The notes below the pieces were generated by a model that was not told the origin of the DNA, did no database searches, and worked only from the letters and a program-made list of their open reading frames with translations. A stretch of DNA of 64,000 nucleotides, taken from positions 1 through 64,000 of the forward strand of contig JAHLWZ010000791.1 of the NCBI GenBank assembly GCA_020536535.1, written 5' to 3'. This document shows positions 18,874-27,313 of the stretch, in pieces. Positions within the stretch are counted from its first letter, which is position 1, and each line of letters opens with the position of its first letter. The DNA comes from Pelomyxa schiedti. Taxonomy: Eukaryota > Protista > Evosea. The translations under genes were made by a program, and so were the position numbers.

Positions 18874-19010
18874 AGTGTCAATGTCACTGTCTTTTTTTTT
18901 TAATTTCCCGTTTCTCCTGTCAACTTGCCAAACGCCAACATTTCCTACGCCTGCGCCAAAGTAAACGATAAAACATAAACAATAAAATCCGGAGCGGGAA
19001 GAAAACTTAA

Positions 19011-19082
19011 TGGCCCCGCTCAGAATCGAACTGAGATCAAGAGAGCCAAAATCTCCCATACTAACCATTATACTACGGAGCC
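19011..19082 (-). tRNA. tRNA-Gln (anticodon TTG)
   Basis: GGCTCCG TA GTAT AATGGTTAGTATG GGAGA TTTTGGC TCTCT TGATC TCAGTTCGATTCTGAG CGGGGCC A folds as a cloverleaf with A/B boxes and a downstream T-run. Confidence 0.93.
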
Positions 19083-19388
19083 TTCACAGTTTGGTGTGTG
19101 GTGAACAGAGTTCGTTCTGCTGCATTGCCTTTTTATCAGAAAGAAAAAATGATGGATATGTGGTTCGAACCAAACACAACACCTGAAATCGGCGAGTTTG
19201 TTGTCATTCCGTTGTCATTCCAGTGTTCCACCTCAACCGGCAATGTCCCTCTCAATTGTCCACACGAGCGCAAAAACCTTTTCTTAATCGCGTTTGAGAA
19301 CAAGGCAAAAAAAAGAGCAAAACAAAAAAGGGAGAATAAAAGGAAGAAGGGGCACGCGGTACTCACCTCGCATCATCTGCACGAAAGA

Positions 19389-21493
19389 ATGAGCAGCGAT
19401 ATCTCCTCCGCTCACCAAGGTCCATCATGCGGAATCACACCGAGAGCGAGTTGACAGGTCTCCCCCAAGACATCCCGGAGCCGCTCGGGGTCGCACCACA
19501 GGGCACCAACACCACCCCGAAAGGCGATCCCGCTCCCCGCTCCAGCCAGCGAAAGAGGCTCAGAAGAGGCAAGCACCCCCCTTCGGCAGCCACCAGCGCA
19601 ACAACCAAGCCTGTGTCGGGCTCGTCACTTCCAAACCCCAACACCCCCAAAGTTGCTTCATCATCATCCTCTTTAACCACAACCACCACCGCCTCTTTGG
19701 CGTCTCCTTCTCTGTCTGAATCCCGCTCGTCCTCCACCTCATCGTCGCAGAGATAACTAGCTACCAAAACCAAGACCCCTTCCTCTTCGTCCTCATCCTC
19801 CTCATCCATAGTAGTAACCTCGAGCCAGAAGAACGTGAATCCCCCAAAATCCAAAAAGGGGAGGGTAGATGAAGAGGCGGAGCCACGCAAACCACTCGTT
19901 GTCGGTCTCACTCCAACCCTCACCATCACACCTGCTGAACGGGAACGAGCCTCAGAAACAGTAACAAATGCGCCAGGCCTCATAGCCTCCTCTTCAATAC
20001 AGTCAGAGGAGCCAATTGGAACTCAAGAAAGCCTCACCAGCAATGCCTCCGAACATAAATCCGCGGTTCTGTCCCACACCGCAACAACACCAGCAGTCAA
20101 TAATAGTGCAGAAAGAAGAATGACTTCCACAGGAGTGACGCCAGTGGGAGACGTAACCATTTCTCCTGGAAACTTCCAAGTTCCAAAGTCGGTGGAGCCG
20201 GACATCGAAGGAATTCTCTTGAGAGATCAGATGGTGAACCTCCTGGCGGGAACTCTTCCCCGGTGCGGGGGTGCCTCTGCCCTGCGAGTCTTGACGCCGT
20301 CGTTGTTATATCCTGTCTTCAATTGGGCAAGAGCAACTGAGAAGAGGCTTGTCATCGTGCTCCGCACAAGCGCACGTCAAGGAATCCCAGACAAGCGAGT
20401 CCTGAAGCTCGGACTCCTGCAGGATGCAGGTGTAATATCCTCCGAGATGGAAGACAATCCCGTTTGGCGTCACCCTGAAGACCGCTTCTGGGTGACATGT
20501 GCTGGAGAGGATCACTACGTGGTTGTGGAGAAGAAGGGTAGAGGGTTCCCTTCCATTTTCAAGCTTCGAAACTTGCAAAGCCCGGGAGATTCGAGGGTAT
20601 TGTTAGTGCACAATGATCCTCCCCCTGGAGTATTTCACTGCAGGACAAACAGCCACTGGATCCTTTATCAATGTGGAGGTGAACCAGAATTTTACATTGA
20701 GCCTGCCCTTCTGCCCGCATCACCGATTAGAAGTTGCCTGTCCTCCCTGTTGAAATTCAAACAAGAAGACCTGGGCTTGTTGGAAGGCCACATTATATCC
20801 TTGGTACTTCTGAGCAAGAGGGAGCCCCACCTGGCGCTCCTCATTTCTCAGAAGGTGAACCCGACTGAGCATCAGATACTCTTTTGGGATGTGAAGAAGT
20901 CCATGGAAAGCAAGCTATTCCACGAGATGGAGAGGTGGTTGGTGACTGGGATTGGCCTGCACGGCGAGACCATTTTAAGCGCGCTTGTGATCAGGTCTGG
21001 TTCCTCCGGTGACGAACTGGGCGACGACGCAGTCGTGGTCGCCAAGTCATCGATGGGCAGAGTATACATCATCAAGAGGAATTCAGCACCTCTCCTCATA
21101 CAAAGTGCCGGGTCAGAAGTCAGGAACTTGTTTCGAGTTGGGAACGGAACCAATTTCTGCGTCACATATGACGGAAGATATGAAATACGAGACGTCAACA
21201 CGCCAGAGGAGGTGCTGATGACCGTCGACACCACAGGGTTCGAGAGTGTCCAGTGGGAGACAAACAGCGGGCTCATGCTGGCAACTTCAGAAAAGAGGAA
21301 TGTGGACCCCACGGATTGCACCAAATCCGACACCATCCAGCACATTCACGTGACAAACGTGGAGGACAACAGATCACTGTGCAGTCTGAAGTTGATTCAA
21401 CGTTGGTACGCTGATACCACCCTCGTCAGGTGTTTCTCGTTCTGTTCCCCTCACAACAACATCCTCCTGGCAACCACACCCCAAACCCCATAA
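19389..21493 (+). CDS. Lineage-specific protein (low-complexity N-terminus, 'LPRCGGASALRVL' motif, beta-rich C-terminus), copy 1; in-frame TAA at 19754
   Basis: 552-codon open frame 19835-21493. The upstream frame is co-linear but has TAA where copy 2 has CAA. Putative 38-nt first intron. Confidence 0.6.
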
Positions 21494-21899
21494 CCAACAA
21501 AATTTGCCGTAAAAAAAAACCTGCCCATAAGTGTTCGTTGGCGGAAATAGAGCTTACAAAAAGCCGATGAAAAAAAAGTCTGGTACAGGCGAAATCAAAT
21601 TAAGAGATTTCCAAAACGGGAGGGGCGAAAGTTAGGCTCTCCTTGAACCGAAAACCACCCACAGGGGACAGATAACCAAGGATACCGTGTGAGGGATGGA
21701 ATAGGCGATGGGATTTGATGCGCTCTAGCCCTGACCTTGACTGATGCTAAGGGGGCGGACCCACTACACCCTGTCTGGCGGAGGTCAACGTCGGCCTGTG
21801 TGACCCTTGGTGAGAAAATTTGGTGAGGATCCCCAAAACAAATCAAAGGGGTGAACCTGTGTCAACATTTTTTTTGCATTCTACCACTCTACAGTGAAC

Positions 21900-23020
21900 C
21901 AAGAAATATATGGGGAGCTAGTTGACAATGATGGTGAGTAGAGGGGAAAACAGCTGAACTTCCAGCAGCTGTGTATAATGTCCCATTGCTGGAAGTACAG
22001 GTGGAATTGATGTCTTGTTTGGGTTGGTGGGGCTTGTGGTTTAATTGTATGTGGGTCTGTGGTTATACTTTTGTTCAAGGCGGGTCATATTGCTGGTATC
22101 TCGGGTGGACCACGGCTGCTTTTGTTGACAACCCCAAAGCCGAGCGGACCTCCACTCACACAAGTTCTTGCGGGAGTGTCGAGGTGTGGAAATTGTAGAG
22201 TCCAACGAGGGTTTTGGCTGCTGTCTTAGCAGAGTCTGGCGAGGGAATTACGTTCAGGATCTTGTGAGGGGCTTCGCGTTTAATTCGCGCCGGAGGTCAG
22301 AGTTATGTCCGCATCTGTTTAGGATGTGCTTCATCATTTCCGGAGAGTCACATCCATAGCGGCAAGTTGGGGCCACATCACAAAGATGCGGTTGTTGAGT
22401 GGCTTCATGTTAGTGGCTACTTGGAGTGCTTGATTATGGATCGATGGTGGGATTCCGGGGGTGTTGAGGTTTCTTGACTAAATTGAGCCAGTTGGTTTCA
22501 GTTGGTGGAGTGTCCATGGCAATGTGAAGTTTGTGGTGTAGGGGTTTGGTGGGTCGTTCTTGCATGATACTCCTGTAGATGTCAGTGGGTGTGCTCATGT
22601 GGGCTGGAATATGCTTATTGAGGAGGGCAATCTCCAAATTGGGCTGGTGTTATCTTTATTTGTGGGGTTATGACGATTGGGGTTGCGATAGGCTGAAGTT
22701 GCTGTTGCAACGTTCCACCACGTCATACAGCCAGGGTGTAGACAGCCCCCCTTGCTTTTTGAGGGTGGTGAGGTGCTCCGGGTGTGCAGTTTGAGGGGGT
22801 GATCAATCGGAAAATCTTGGTCATGTATGGTTTCCAGATGTCTGTTGGGGAGAAAACTTCGAATCGGCATTGGTATTGGAGGATGGAGTGGATGTAGATA
22901 TTGGCAGCCAACACTTTGCGTTGGAGGCCAATAACCTTCGGAATGATGGCTTGAGCTCTCTTGCAGGCTTTGTTGATTGCTGGTTCAATCTTTTCTTTAG
23001 CGGTGATGTGACCGATGTGT
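21900..23020 (-). mobile_element. Decayed, 5'-truncated non-LTR retrotransposon (L1/Tx1-like ORF2 C-terminal part), copy A
   Basis: LQRKVLAANIYIHSILQY (post-RT region), LKKQGGL motif, zf-RVT-like CRYGCDSPEMMKHILNRC, SPDSAKTAAKTLVGLY; frameshifts and stops. The 3' boundary is approximate. Confidence 0.8.
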
Positions 23021-24877
23021 GCTGCTTCATCATCCTCCATTATCACAACCACCACAGGGTCTTCAGCTTCTCCTTCCCCGTCTGCACCTCCATCCCGCTC
23101 GTCCTCGGCCTCATCGTTGCTGAGACAACTAGCTCCACCTCATCGTCGCAGAGACAACTAGCTACCAAAACCAAGACCCCTTCCTCTTCGTCCTCATCCT
23201 CCTCATCCATAGTAGTAACCTCGAGCCAGAAGAACGTGAATCCCCCAAAATCCAAAAAGGGGAGGGTAGATGAAGAGGCGGAGCCACGCAAACCACTCGT
23301 TGTCGGTCTCACTCCAACCATCAGCACCATCGCGGCTGCTGCTGTTGCTGAACGTGAAAGAGCCTCAGAAACAGGCACAAATGTGCCAAGCCTCACAGCC
23401 TCTTCTTCAATACAGTCAGAGGATCCAATTGGAACTCAAGAAAGCCTCACCAGCAATACCTCCGAATGTAAATCCGCAGCTCTGTTCGACACCACAATAA
23501 CCCCAGCAGCCAACGGTGTGGCTGAGACAAGAATGATTTCCGCATCCACAGGGGTTCCTCCTGGAAACTTCCAAGTGCCAAGGTCCGTGGAGCCGGACAT
23601 CGACGGAATATTCTTGCGAGAACAGATGGTGAGCCTTTTGGCGGGAACTCTTCCCCGGTGTGGAGGTGCATCTGCCCTGCGAGTTTTGACGCCGTCTTTG
23701 TTATATCCCGTCTTCGATTGGGCAAGGGCCACAGAGAAGAGGCTGGTCATCATGCTCCGCACAGCCACCAGTCAAGGAAGCCCAGACCAGCGAGCCCTGA
23801 AGCTCGGACTCTGGCAGGGGGCAGGTGTCATATCCTATGAAATGGAAGACAATCCCATTTTGCTTCACCCTGAAGACAACTGGTGGGTGACCTGGGCTGG
23901 AGAAGAAGGGTCAAGGGTTCCCTTCCATTTTCAAGCTTCGTAACTTGTGAAGCCCGGAAGATTGGAGGGTCTTGCTGGAGCACCGCGATCCTCCCCCTGG
24001 AGTATTTCACTGCCGGACAAACAGCCACTGGCTCCTTTATTACTGTGGGGAACCAGAATTTTACATTGAGACTGCCCTTCTGCCCCCACCACAAATTGGA
24101 GGTTCCCGGTCTTCCCCGTTGAAAGTTCAACAAGAAGACCTGGGCCTGTTGGAAGGGCACGTGATTTCCTTTGTCACCCTGAGCAAGAGGGAGCCCCACC
24201 TGGCGCTCCTCATTTCCCTGAAGATGAGCCCGACGATCTCGCCAACAGAGTATCAGATAATATTTTGGAATGTTAAGAAATCCTTGGAGAGCAAGCGATT
24301 ACACGAGATCGAGAGGTGGCCGGTAACTGGGACCCAGGCCCTGCCCCATGAGACCATTTCAATGGCATTTGTGATCAGGTCCGGTTCCTCTGATTACGAC
24401 TTGGGCGACGACGCAGTCGTGGTCGCCAAGTCATCGACGAGCAGAGTATACGTCATAAAGAGGAATTCAGCAGTGCCTCACCTCGTCCAAAGTGCTGGAT
24501 GTGAAGCCAGGAACTTGTTCCGAATCGGGAACGGAACCAAGTTCTGTGTGACGTACGACGGTAGATATGAAGTGCGAGACGTCAACACGCCAGAGGAGGT
24601 GCTGATGACCGTCGACACAACAGGGTTCGAGAGTGTCCAGTGGGAGACAAACAACGGTCTCATGCTGGCAACTTCAGAAAAGAGGAAGGTGGACCCCACG
24701 GATTGCACCAAATCCGACACCATCCAGCACATTCACGTGACGAACGTGGAGGACAACATACCACTGTTCAGGTTGAAGTTGATACAACGTTGGTACAACG
24801 TTGGTACGCTGAGACCTCCCTCGTCAGGTGTTTCTCGTTCTGTTCCCCTCGCAACCACACCCCAACAAAACCCGTGA
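23021..24877 (+). pseudogene. 5'-truncated, frameshifted copy 2 of the 19389-21493 gene
   Basis: Co-linear paralog with a 23-nt deletion at about 23900 and an 11-nt duplication at 24786-24807; its 5' end is replaced by retroelement A. Confidence 0.85.
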
Positions 24878-25005
24878 AACAAAAAATTTGTGGAGGGACT
24901 CTCAAAAAAGAAGGCGAGCCGGTCCCATAAGTCTTTGTTGGTGGAATCTCCCTTCTAAAAAAGCCGGCGAACGCCGCAACTAGACGCAAAGAAACTCACT
25001 TTCCA

Positions 25006-25290
25006 AGGCGAAATCAAATTAAGAGATTTCCAAAACGGGAGGGGCGAAAGTAGCTCTCCCAGAACCGAAAACCGTCCATGGGGAAAGAATAACCAAAGGA
25101 TACCCGTGGTGGAATAGGCGATGGGATTTGATGCGCTCTAGCCCTGACCTTGACCAATGTTAAGGGGGCGGATCTACTACACCTTGTCTGGCGGAGGCAA
25201 TGTCGGCCTGTGTTACCCTTGGTGAGGAATTTTGGTGAGGATCCCCAAAAAAAAACCATTGAGAAGGGCGTGAACCTTGAAAATTTTTTT
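25006..25290. repeat. Duplicated 3' flank, paralogous to about 21587-21870
   Basis: Shared blocks such as GGCGAAATCAAATTAAGAGATTTCCAAAACGGGAGGGGCGAAAG and GGAATAGGCGATGGGATTTGATGCGCTCTAGCCCTGACCTTGAC. Confidence 0.9.
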
Positions 25291-25376
25291 TTTTCTCTCC
25301 AGCCAAGCCTTGATTTGGACCAAAGTAAACGATAAAACCATAAACAATACAATCGGGAGGGTGAAGAGAAATTAAT

Positions 25377-25434
25377 GCTCAGAATGGAACTGAGATCAAG
25401 AGAGCCAATATCTCCCATACTAACTAAATACAGG
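25377..25434 (-). pseudogene. Degenerate tRNA-Gln copy; its flank 25319-25376 is also copied from 18956-19010
   Basis: CTCAGAATgGAACTGAGATCAAGAGAGCCAAtATCTCCCATACTAAC matches the intact tRNA. The 3' acceptor stem is deleted, the T-loop is mutated and the 5' end is degenerate. Confidence 0.9.
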
Positions 25435-25445
25435 TTAAGCCCACA

Positions 25446-26216
25446 CAGACGGCAGGCGTGTGTTGTAGTTATTACTGAAAAACGGTGTGGTGGGGGGCTT
25501 CTAGTGTACCGTGAGTGGCGTGGTTGTATGTGCGGTGTGTTGCTGACCAGAGGCGGTTTTGTGACGGTCTGGGTCTTCTCCCCGGTGTTTATGGAGGGTG
25601 GTGTATGTGATTGGGAGGGATCACAGCTTCCAAGTCAATCTTCGATTGAGTTGGAAGACCAACGTTCCTAGTGGCGGATTTAGTGGTGTTCGGGGTGTTA
25701 GGAGTGACATTCAGAGTCTTCGGGGAGTTTAACCGGAGTTCCTTGCGGATTGCGGCATTGTGGCGGCATGTGTTGAGGATGTGCTTGACCGATTCCGGGG
25801 AATTGCAGCCGTGCCGGCATGTTGAAGCAATGAGGAGGATGTGGTACAGGCGGTTGTTCAGGGGCTTCATGCCGGTTGCAATTTGGAGAGCAAGGTTCCG
25901 CAGGGTTGGAGGGATTCCCTTGGTGTTGAGATTCTTAACCAGGTTCATCCAGTGAGCCGGTGTTGGTTTCTCTATCATTGTGGTCCGAAGCTTGTGGCGC
26001 AGGGATTTTCCTGGGGTTCGTCCAGGATTGCCCTGTAAATGTCAGTAGGGTTCCTGAGGGTTGGTGGAATCTTCTCATTGAACGCGTGGATTATCTGCAG
26101 TGGGGAGGTTCTTTGGGTCCGTGCAGTTTGGGTGCCTGACGGCTGACACAGCGGTGGCAACATTCCACCATGCCATGTCCAGCAGGGGGTGGCAAAGCCC
26201 CATCTGCTGTGAGCGT
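25446..26216 (-). mobile_element. 5'-truncated non-LTR retrotransposon fragment, copy B
   Basis: PTDIYRAIL, WMNLVKNL...LRNLALQIATGMKPLNNRL...CRHGCNSPESVKHILNTC (zf-RVT-like CCHC), homologous to copy A. Confidence 0.85.
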
Positions 26217-26246
26217 TAACCACTATACTACGGAGTTAAGCCCACA
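26217..26246 (-). repeat. Putative target-site duplication: tRNA-Gln nt 3-21 plus TGTGGGCTTAA
   Basis: 26217-26235 matches 19062-19080 at 18/19 nt. GTTAAGCCCACA occurs at both 26235-26246 and 25434-25445. Confidence 0.75.
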
Positions 26247-26620
26247 TGTCGGGCATTTTTTATACTGGGATTGGGGAGTGTATGGTGGCTGCTACGGTGT
26301 GGTGTTGGGTTATTTGGTTTGCGCAATGCTTTGTTTGTTTTGGGTTGTGTTTGTTTTTTGTTGTGTGTTTGGCTTGACGGCGATTTGGCGGTTACTGGTT
26401 ATACTGATTTAATTGTAGGTGGGGCTGCAGTTATTGGTTTGTTCATGGCGGGTCATATTGCTGGTTTCTTGGGAGGACAACGGCTGCTTTTTGGACAATC
26501 CCAAAGCCGAACGAACCTCCACTCGCGCTAATTCCTGCGAGAGTGTTGAGGTGTGGTAATTGTAGAGTCCGACGAGGGTTTTGGCTGCTGTCTTAGCAGA
26601 GTCCGGCGAAAGTGCCACAG
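26247..26620 (-). mobile_element. Short 3' fragment of the same non-LTR family, copy C
   Basis: SPDSAKTAAKTLVGLYNYHTSTL..; the DNA at about 26408-26610 aligns with about 22040-22243 of copy A. Confidence 0.8.
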
Positions 26621-26749
26621 CCTACCAACAGCCCTCAGCTTCTATACGGGAAGTACTGTCATCCTACATCTAAGGCACAGACTAAGGTCCTGGAAGTACC
26701 ACACCACGGCACGGCATATGTACTTGGCTTGGTTTTTTTTTTTTTTTAT

Positions 26750-27083
26750 CTCTTGCGTGCCAGTTGGGGGTAGTAGTGGCAGTGGTAGTGGCAGTGGCAG
26801 TGGCAGTAGACACCGGAGGTTCTCTCCCACACGAAGGAGGCGCGGCCGAGGTAGTTGTGCCTGGCACTGGCACTGGCACTACCGCCGAGCTGCGAGGTAC
26901 GAGAGGGCGCACAGGGACCGCCCCCGGCGTCGGCGCACGCCAGGCACACCGTGTGCCGGCACGTGTAGGGCAACGGGACGGACCAGGCCCACCAGTACCG
27001 AGGGGCCCCCCCGAGCACGACGACGAGTCGCACACGCCGCACCACACCGTCTCCTCCTACGTATCGTGTTCTTCCTGTTGCAT
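26750..27083 (-). pseudogene. Probable decayed RING-finger gene
   Basis: MQQEEHDT*EETVWCGVCD, then after a frameshift VPLPYTCRHTVCLAC; RING ligands are split over two frames. Confidence 0.45.
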
Positions 27084-27313
27084 CTTCAGCGAACGAATGT
27101 CCCACTGGCGGCTAGTCCATGCAATGTTTCTGAAAGATGTTACGCATGTCACCCCTGTCACCCACGTAAGGATCTTCTGGACCACGTGTTGGGAGCGCCA
27201 CCGGGAGAGAATAGGTTACCCCACCAACTTGGAAGTTCGGAAAACCCAAAACAAACGCGAAAATCAAGAGTTGAACTCCAACAAAATCAAACAACACCAC
27301 ACCCCACAGCTGG

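Follow-up and report, generated by a model that had tools for sequence, protein, structure and literature searches.

How does a piece of a transfer RNA (tRNA) gene come to lie between two fragments of a retrotransposon, with a second, damaged tRNA gene directly behind them? The question is raised by positions 25,377 to 26,620 of a stretch of Pelomyxa schiedti DNA that we call the window, which is nucleotides (nt) 1-64000 of contig C791 in an assembly of 52.4 Mb and 5337 contigs. An earlier interpretation made from the letters of the window (the sequence-only reading) had proposed a retrotransposon without long terminal repeats (non-LTR) that targets tRNA-Gln, is inserted in tandem and duplicates the 5' end of the tRNA. 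The data suggest, with a probability of roughly 0.85, that the window carries tandem 5'-truncated copies of a family of long interspersed nuclear elements (LINEs) of the apurinic/apyrimidinic endonuclease (APE) type, which targets the starts of tRNA genes and leaves a target-site duplication (TSD) over the A box. The features on which this rests are as follows.

19011-19082, minus strand: intact tRNA-Gln(TTG), the unoccupied reference target (ARAGORN and sequence).
25377-25433, minus strand: decayed tRNA-Gln 3' of element B (read from the sequence; uncalled by ARAGORN).
25434-26216, minus strand: element B, 5'-truncated, with the C-terminal part of open reading frame (ORF) 2 (two stops), the 3' untranslated region (UTR) and the terminal 12-mer at 25434-25445.
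25766-25819, minus strand: CX3CX7HX4C zinc-finger motif in ORF2 of element B (translation of ORF 25589-25978).
26217-26235, minus strand: tRNA-Gln nt 3-21, the upstream TSD copy, between the 3' end of element C and the 5' end of element B.
26235-26609, minus strand: element C, from a second subfamily (C1517/C139-like), of which a 3' fragment remains; terminal 12-mer at 26235-26246.

The intact tRNA-Gln(TTG) is the sole tRNA that ARAGORN called on the window. The 19-mer at 26217-26235 differs from nt 3-21 of this gene by one mismatch, which is the 18/19 match noted before, and 0.00 such matches are expected by chance. There are exactly two copies of the 12-mer TGTGGGCTTAAC in the window, both on the minus strand and at the ends of elements B and C; two matches also arose in 4 of 100 shuffles. 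The 3' UTRs of B and C are unrelated and are alike only over the last ~12-20 nt, which bears out the claim of two divergent copies with a common end. Element B (25446-26216) has more than 20 genomic matches. It is ~91% identical (blastn) over 25665-26217 to copies on C659, C806, C1183 and C832, and has 75% amino acid (aa) identity to the intact ORF of the family. Similarity to the longer copies stops precisely at 26216/26217, showing that B is 5'-truncated; C and many other family copies are 5'-truncated as well. The decayed tRNA-Gln behind B has indels within nt 3-18 and retains the anticodon and T arms. Its 3' acceptor strand is gone, and is still present in the sister copy on C3784. The order C, tRNA nt 3-21, truncated B, decayed tRNA-Gln is that of tandem insertions, as had been claimed, and tandem family copies are also found on C711.

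The 3' end of the family is TGTGGGCTTAA followed by one to five C, and there is no poly(A) tail. The exact 12-mer has 20 genomic occurrences. When one mismatch was allowed the genomic count equalled the control count, so only exact 12-mers are informative. Some flanks were read as only the 80 nt downstream of each match and others as whole loci. A co-oriented tRNA or tRNA remnant lies within the downstream 80 nt in 11 of the 20: five are tRNA-Gln (C832, C1718, C3784 and elements B and C of the window), four are the Pro, Ser, Met and Ile genes listed below, and the last two are on C312 and C659. Additionally, a pattern made of the terminus and a B box at tRNA spacing gave seven matches against one in the reversed control. 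The readable junctions are these.

C832 and C1380 (one-mismatch motif): tRNA-Gln from nt 3.
Window element C: tRNA-Gln from nt 3.
Window element B and C3784: decayed tRNA-Gln from about nt 3.
C597: tRNA-Pro(AGG) from nt 3.
C2312: tRNA-Ser(TGA) from nt 2.
C3920: tRNA-Met(CAT) from nt 2.
C1718: complete tRNA-Gln, beginning 11 nt beyond the 12-mer.
C478: tRNA-Ile(TAT), beginning 12 nt beyond the 12-mer.
C312: a tRNA-like gene with a B box, from about nt 2.

The 3' terminus of the family adjoins tRNA genes of at least five specificities. All these targets are in the orientation of the element, at positions +1 to +4 or, in two cases, -11/-12. The co-orientation of the element with a tRNA whose 5' end it adjoins, first noticed in the window, holds across the readable tRNA junctions. 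The nick between -6 and +2 that had been proposed does not hold; the junctions put the first nick at about +1 to +4, or twice at -11/-12. The spacer between the TTAA and the target is one to five C and the following base is T in most cases; the C run could stem from a short oligo(C) tail or from the addition of bases in the course of priming. A conserved 3' hairpin was looked for in the folds of four termini; z was near 0 and no stable terminal hairpin was predicted.

The range of targets bears directly on the idea that the element is sequence-specific for tRNA-Gln alone, as R1 and R2 are for 28S ribosomal DNA (rDNA). Five or six readable junctions are at tRNA-Gln(TTG), and the terminal TGTGGGCT of the element is similar to the 5' flank plus nt 1-4 of the Gln gene. 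However, the tRNA-Pro(AGG), Ser(TGA), Met(CAT) and Ile(TAT) genes share the terminus and differ in their first 20 nt, and the excess of Gln may stem simply from its gene number: tRNA-Gln(TTG) has at least 40 genomic copies, and 32 of these do not differ at any of the 72 nt. Specificity for tRNA-Gln, as the sequence-only reading had it, is therefore very unlikely, and what the targets share is being the start of a tRNA gene. Among the tRNA-Gln matches only those on C832 and C1380 start at nt 3 and not at nt 1. At least 40 copies is in itself a large family for a 52-Mb genome. The same junctions settle the nature of the shared 11-mer, which had been taken to be either the element terminus or diverged target. 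Because the 12-mer also precedes tRNA-Pro, -Ser, -Met and -Ile genes with differing 5' ends, it is the element's own terminus and not diverged target.

The copy on C832 gives both sides of an insertion. There, ~1.18 kb upstream of the 3' junction, stand nt 1-21/22 of tRNA-Gln and its 5' flank, which is the flank of the intact window gene. The tRNA 5' part leads straight into GGGGAGACC and the rest of the element, and tRNA nt 3-72 follow the 3' end. This one copy, complete in having both ends and internally deleted between them, is flanked by an 18-20 base pair (bp) duplication of tRNA nt 3/4-21/22, spanning the A box. A duplication of 19-30 bp over the A box had been predicted from the window; the A box and the low end of the size range agree with C832 and the larger sizes do not. 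The 265-bp head that follows the tRNA part on C832 is found at nine genomic places and seven of the matches begin at query base 1 or 2. We take the head to be the 5' end of the family because it recurs with a shared start, including in one copy that stands in a different context on C4458.

The head begins with three to five G at the junction and may include untemplated G. Joined to the last ~0.9 kb of the element, it forms a non-autonomous derivative that has itself multiplied (C832:51157-51424, which is L005 2045-2312 on the minus strand; also C4458, C258, C4844, C530, C821, C2312 and C819). A tRNA-like module within the head, considered on account of A-box- and B-box-like strings, was rejected: Rfam gave nothing at E 10 (161 nt) and the fold had a z of -1.8.

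The window fragment at 26217-26235 ends at tRNA A21, which is the boundary of the upstream TSD copy on C832. It also has a G15 variant in common with the downstream tRNA remnant on C3784, and this fits two halves of one duplicated target. The fragment might instead be a recombination or deletion scar in a tandem array of tRNA-plus-gene units, with no TSD involved. Such an origin would draw on the three paralogous tRNA-plus-flank units in the window, on contig C139, where the same locus has different deletions at short microhomologies, and on the heavy changes in the downstream partner of the supposed TSD. It is nevertheless improbable, because the fragment stops at nt 21 just as the clean TSD does at another locus (C832), because it begins at nt 3 exactly at the element terminus, like C832 and C1380, and because G15 recurs in the C3784 downstream copy.

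Logan contigs, which are built independently of the assembly, bridge both window junctions with no mismatches in two public runs of one sample (records of 1040 nt, 26017-27057; 448 nt, 26032-26479; and 390 nt, 25175-25564). The junction at 26217-26246, on which the sequence-only reading leaned, is among those bridged. The sample is probably the source of the genome assembly; with a single shared sample an assembler artefact is therefore ruled out, yet independent biological support is not gained. Artefacts of single-cell whole-genome amplification or assembly chimeras would be in keeping with a genome that comes from single-cell genomics (PMC8887013) and with 5337 contigs, many element-bearing ones of which are short. 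They are hardly to be expected, however, as the source of a junction type that is seen on more than 10 contigs with different tRNAs and that the contigs of both runs span at both places, and chimeras would not yield TSDs, whose structure here is as biology predicts. We consider such an origin highly improbable.

A further possibility is that the tRNA belongs to the mobile unit as a tRNA-derived 3' tail, or that tRNA retrocopies landed behind resident elements. The tRNA does always come after the element and in the same orientation, but one terminus is joined to different tRNAs, each with its own 3' flank and terminator. The decayed tRNA-Gln of the window (25377-25433) has a 3' flank similar to that of the unoccupied gene at 19011-19082, and on C832 the conserved Gln 5' flank is found at the opposite end of the element. 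The odds of a mobile tRNA are, on this evidence, very small.

Taken together, the data suggest that the tRNA gene was there first and that the LINE family inserted into it. The insertions would proceed by target-primed reverse transcription. The antisense strand would be nicked first, at roughly nt +1 to +4 and sometimes at -11/-12, and the sense strand second, ~19 bp further on at nt 21/22, which places the A box between the cuts. The flank with nt 1-21 would then stand 5' of each insertion, and nt 3-72 would stand 3' of it. If either of these parts were hit once more, the order C, nt 3-21, B, tRNA would result, and we explain the order in the window by two successive insertions at the same tRNA position. 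Which of the two came first is a matter on which both orders fit alike. The replacement of nt 1-2 would break two acceptor-stem pairs and disable the occupied gene. The occupied copy is probably dead because these pairs are lost, and the remnant in the window has indeed decayed. The host presumably tolerates a disabled copy because tRNA-Gln(TTG) is so abundant.

How the target is read can be narrowed down only in part. There is about an even chance that the element responds to the RNA polymerase III (Pol III) complex (TFIIIB/TFIIIC) on the gene; reading of the A-box region of the DNA is a real but lesser possibility. Tethering to the Pol III complex is favoured over A-box reading because the targets share position and not sequence. 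A bolder proposal would be an unprecedented mode of integration, in which a LINE is guided by the pre-initiation complex of Pol III, or by the A box beneath that complex, nicks at nt 2/3 and 21/22 and so enters the mature sequence of any tRNA gene. We regard this as tentative and rather unlikely.

What kind of element is it? In the longer copies on C659 and C806 an ORF of ~576-580 aa leads directly into the region homologous to B. In both copies an RVT_1 match (E 6e-32 in the C659 ORF) lies immediately upstream of this region, confirming that the element is of the non-LTR type. The best matches of the family ORF in PDB are human L1 ORF2p and R2. Whether the endonuclease was APE or restriction-like (RLE) had been left open, and other family copies point to APE: on C900 (35728-36333, minus strand) there is a match to PF03372 (Exo_endo_phos, APE) of 38.9 bits, with a cut-off of 24.5, ~0.8 kb upstream of a family reverse transcriptase (RT) and on the same strand. 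Additionally, the annotated protein P0011 has an APE-like N-terminus followed by sequence that shares 54% identity with the C806 ORF. The APE matches of P0011 are weak (Pfam E 0.001; the L1 endonuclease in PDB E 0.006). For its RT N-terminal extension the match to L1 ORF2p is at 1e-13 and that to R2 at 1e-3. As to placement in the L1 or the Tx1 clade, the sole indication is this extension, which is far closer to L1 ORF2p than to R2.

The C-terminal CCHC finger of zf-RVT type, also claimed before, is upheld by alignment: the CX3CX7HX4C motif at 25766-25819 aligns with the CCHC of relatives that bear zf-RVT. The Pfam match on the window peptide does not carry the claim by itself (E 0.035, 15 bits, below the cut-off), and a genome-wide search with the zf-RVT profile gave no match, nor did its control, so that this search tells nothing either way. 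RNase H was not found; the only domain in the 576-aa ORF, which ends ~210 nt before the 3' end, is RVT_1. RNase H is present in two of the nearest relatives outside the Pelomyxa family. Because of the RVT_1 domain, the APE on C900 and P0011, the CCHC finger and the L1 ORF2p-like RT extension, the family is classed, on sequence grounds, as an APE-RT-zinc-finger LINE of L1-like type. It has the hallmarks of such elements in its non-LTR-type RT, N-terminal APE, C-terminal CCHC finger, TSD and frequent 5' truncation. ESM Atlas supports only the RT and zf-RVT type, and a scan of JGI metagenomes found no relative. No tRNA was found on the contigs of the outside relatives P0008, P0010 and P0014, which stop too early.

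Several points weigh against the proposal that the family is an APE-type LINE directed to tRNA gene starts. APE was seen on C900, C644 and P0011 and not on the window copies or on those whose junctions were read, and the APE-RT-finger layout is pieced together across copies, none of which was read end to end. A clean two-sided insertion with a TSD is found on C832 only; no TSD was found at the other loci, whose 5' ends fall beyond the sequence covered. B's downstream TSD partner in the window is strongly changed in nt 3-18. Some of the Gln junctions sit in paralogous duplicated units and are hence not all independent. The read support comes from one sample, probably the assembly's own, and because of the C run at the junction the nick can be placed only to within 1-2 nt. 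Finally, tRNAs do not follow every terminus, so that the expectation of tRNA genes at 3' junctions throughout the genome holds for the 11 of 20 exact 12-mers and fails for several others. The common flank of C711b, C1517 and C3542 has no recognisable tRNA, and none follows the termini on C198, C258 and C711a, the last of which is succeeded by another 5'-truncated copy. On C34 and C860 no C run follows the 12-mer, which may be there by chance; ~6 chance matches are expected from the genome size. Downstream of the termini on C1183 and C806 there are only a B-box-like motif and a T run.

ARAGORN and Rfam (E 0.1) called no tRNA downstream of C659, C1183 or C806. A focused scan of C659 gave a weak tRNA match (17 bits, E 0.2) that starts 27 nt past the junction. 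At L002 2427-2500, L004 2422-2495 and L003 2453-2524 a B-box-like motif and a T-run terminator, uncalled by standard tools, come after the terminus. The B-box-like sequences after these three termini may be decayed tRNAs or another type of Pol III gene.

Two further features of the window belong to the surroundings of the locus.

22037-23026, minus strand: element A, a third fragment of the LINE family, of the C1517-like subfamily (blastn to L063, 92% identity).
26610-27010, minus strand: Cys-rich RING-like coding sequence of the host, flanking element C upstream (matches the C139 flank only).

Element A has protein matches at 22111-23022. Its 3' terminus is gone, and presumably once adjoined a tRNA that is now also lost. 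The run from 18956 to 25435 holds a ~3.4-kb unit of tRNA, flank and gene in three tandem copies: the first has the intact tRNA-Gln, the second has element A in the place of the tRNA and the third has C, B and the decayed tRNA (compare 21610-21875 with 25029-25290). A related unit is also present on C832.

Element C is 79% identical to L063 and 92.5% to L006 (C139:1-2560) by blastn. The latter sequence corresponds to window 25610-27010 as a variant, either a haplotype or a paralogue, and contains a run of N at its positions 555-654. In it ~860 bases absent from the window separate the host flank from element C, and a deletion in it fuses C to B at a CCCC microhomology, with loss of the tRNA fragment. 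Relative to C139 the 5' part of element C is deleted in the window, and because C139 shows a variant locus with different deletions, C is without a 5' junction here. The host flank lies outside the element. A RING-like Cys-rich coding sequence with CCACTG/CCAGTG hexamer repeats extends over 26700-27200 on the minus strand, and Pfam gave no match for the window ORFs around element C.

Contigs from single-cell RNA libraries match window 25463-25790, the 3' part of B, at 95-99% identity; they derive from sister copies such as that on C3784. These are weak hints that the LINE family may be transcribed, and carry-over of DNA is also possible.

The targeting of tRNA genes is a textbook case of mobile elements using safe sites in compact genomes. 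The Pelomyxa family represents this known strategy at a new position, in a lineage for which there is no earlier report. No published account of the family was found in the literature searched, and neither transposons nor tRNAs are treated in the text of the P. schiedti genome paper (PMC8887013). The family bears on the origin of tRNA targeting in Amoebozoa and adds an anaerobic archamoeba to the hosts of tRNA-targeted LINEs. Should its RT fall among the dictyostelid TREs, L1-like tRNA targeting would go back to the ancestor that Archamoebae and Dictyostelia share; should it fall elsewhere, there would have been a further independent gain. The solution adopted is also a different one: the first bases of the gene are cut and one copy of a multicopy gene is sacrificed, as by rDNA-specific elements, and this in many tRNA species. 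Around the A box, the fixed stagger of 18-20 bp provides a concrete footprint for the reading of the target. For annotation, occupied tRNA genes still score as tRNAs although they are without nt 1-2.

Site-specific LINEs of the R1/R2/Tx1 type recognise one fixed DNA sequence in multicopy RNA genes. The Pelomyxa family resembles them in disrupting one copy of a multicopy RNA gene, in a precise 3' junction without poly(A) and in its tandem and 5'-truncated copies. It differs in that its targets share a position in the tRNA gene and not a sequence.

Other non-LTR retrotransposons specific for tRNA genes are NeSL-1_TV (tRNA-Pro), LIN15_SM (tRNA-Arg) and LIN25_SM (tRNA-Glu), which are NeSL-related and belong to the RLE lineage (Kojima and Jurka 2015, PMC4640811). 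Each uses one tRNA species, whereas the Pelomyxa family is of the APE type and uses at least five. Integration is also tied to the start of a Pol III gene in Ty3, which integrates at the Pol III transcription start site, and in DGLT-A, which integrates ~15 bp upstream (PMC5911963, PMC5006619), and the -11/-12 junctions in Pelomyxa are within that range. These elements, however, have LTRs, use an integrase on cDNA, make short TSDs, integrate in either orientation (Ty3) and stay out of the mature tRNA sequence. For TRE5-A and Ty3, tethering to the Pol III complex is established (PMC5911963).

Compared by layout and position, the nearest analogues are the tRNA-targeted LINEs of dictyostelids, TRE5, TRE3 and especially NLTR-A. 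The sequence-only reading was correct that TRE5 and TRE3 differ in position, and had missed NLTR-A of D. purpureum and the NeSL/LIN elements. TRE5 is found 40-54 bp upstream of tRNA genes and in the opposite orientation, TRE3 40-150 bp downstream (PMC5006619, PMC5911963) and the tRNA-targeted LINE Pp_NLTR-B ~50 bp upstream (PMC5006619); no TRE-like elements were found outside dictyostelids, including in other amoebozoans (Spaller et al. 2016, PMC5006619). TRE5-A and TRE3 are, like the Pelomyxa family, amoebozoan LINEs with an APE-RT-zinc-finger ORF2, which choose tRNA genes by position and show tandem or multiple occupancy. In contrast, the TREs end in oligo(A) and spare the tRNA, whereas the Pelomyxa element is co-oriented, extends into the gene and ends in TTAA and a C run. 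It is further set apart from the dictyostelid elements by its TSD of 18-20 bp across the A box. The closest known integration position is that of NLTR-A, which is found 2-6 bp upstream of the 5' end of the mature molecule for many kinds of tRNA (Spaller et al. 2016, PMC5006619) and is likewise an amoebozoan APE non-LTR element. NLTR-A remains outside the mature sequence and has RNase H after the RT, whereas the Pelomyxa element has a CCHC finger and no RNase H match, and none of its junctions that were read lies at -2 to -6; they are usually at +1 to +4, and otherwise at -11/-12.

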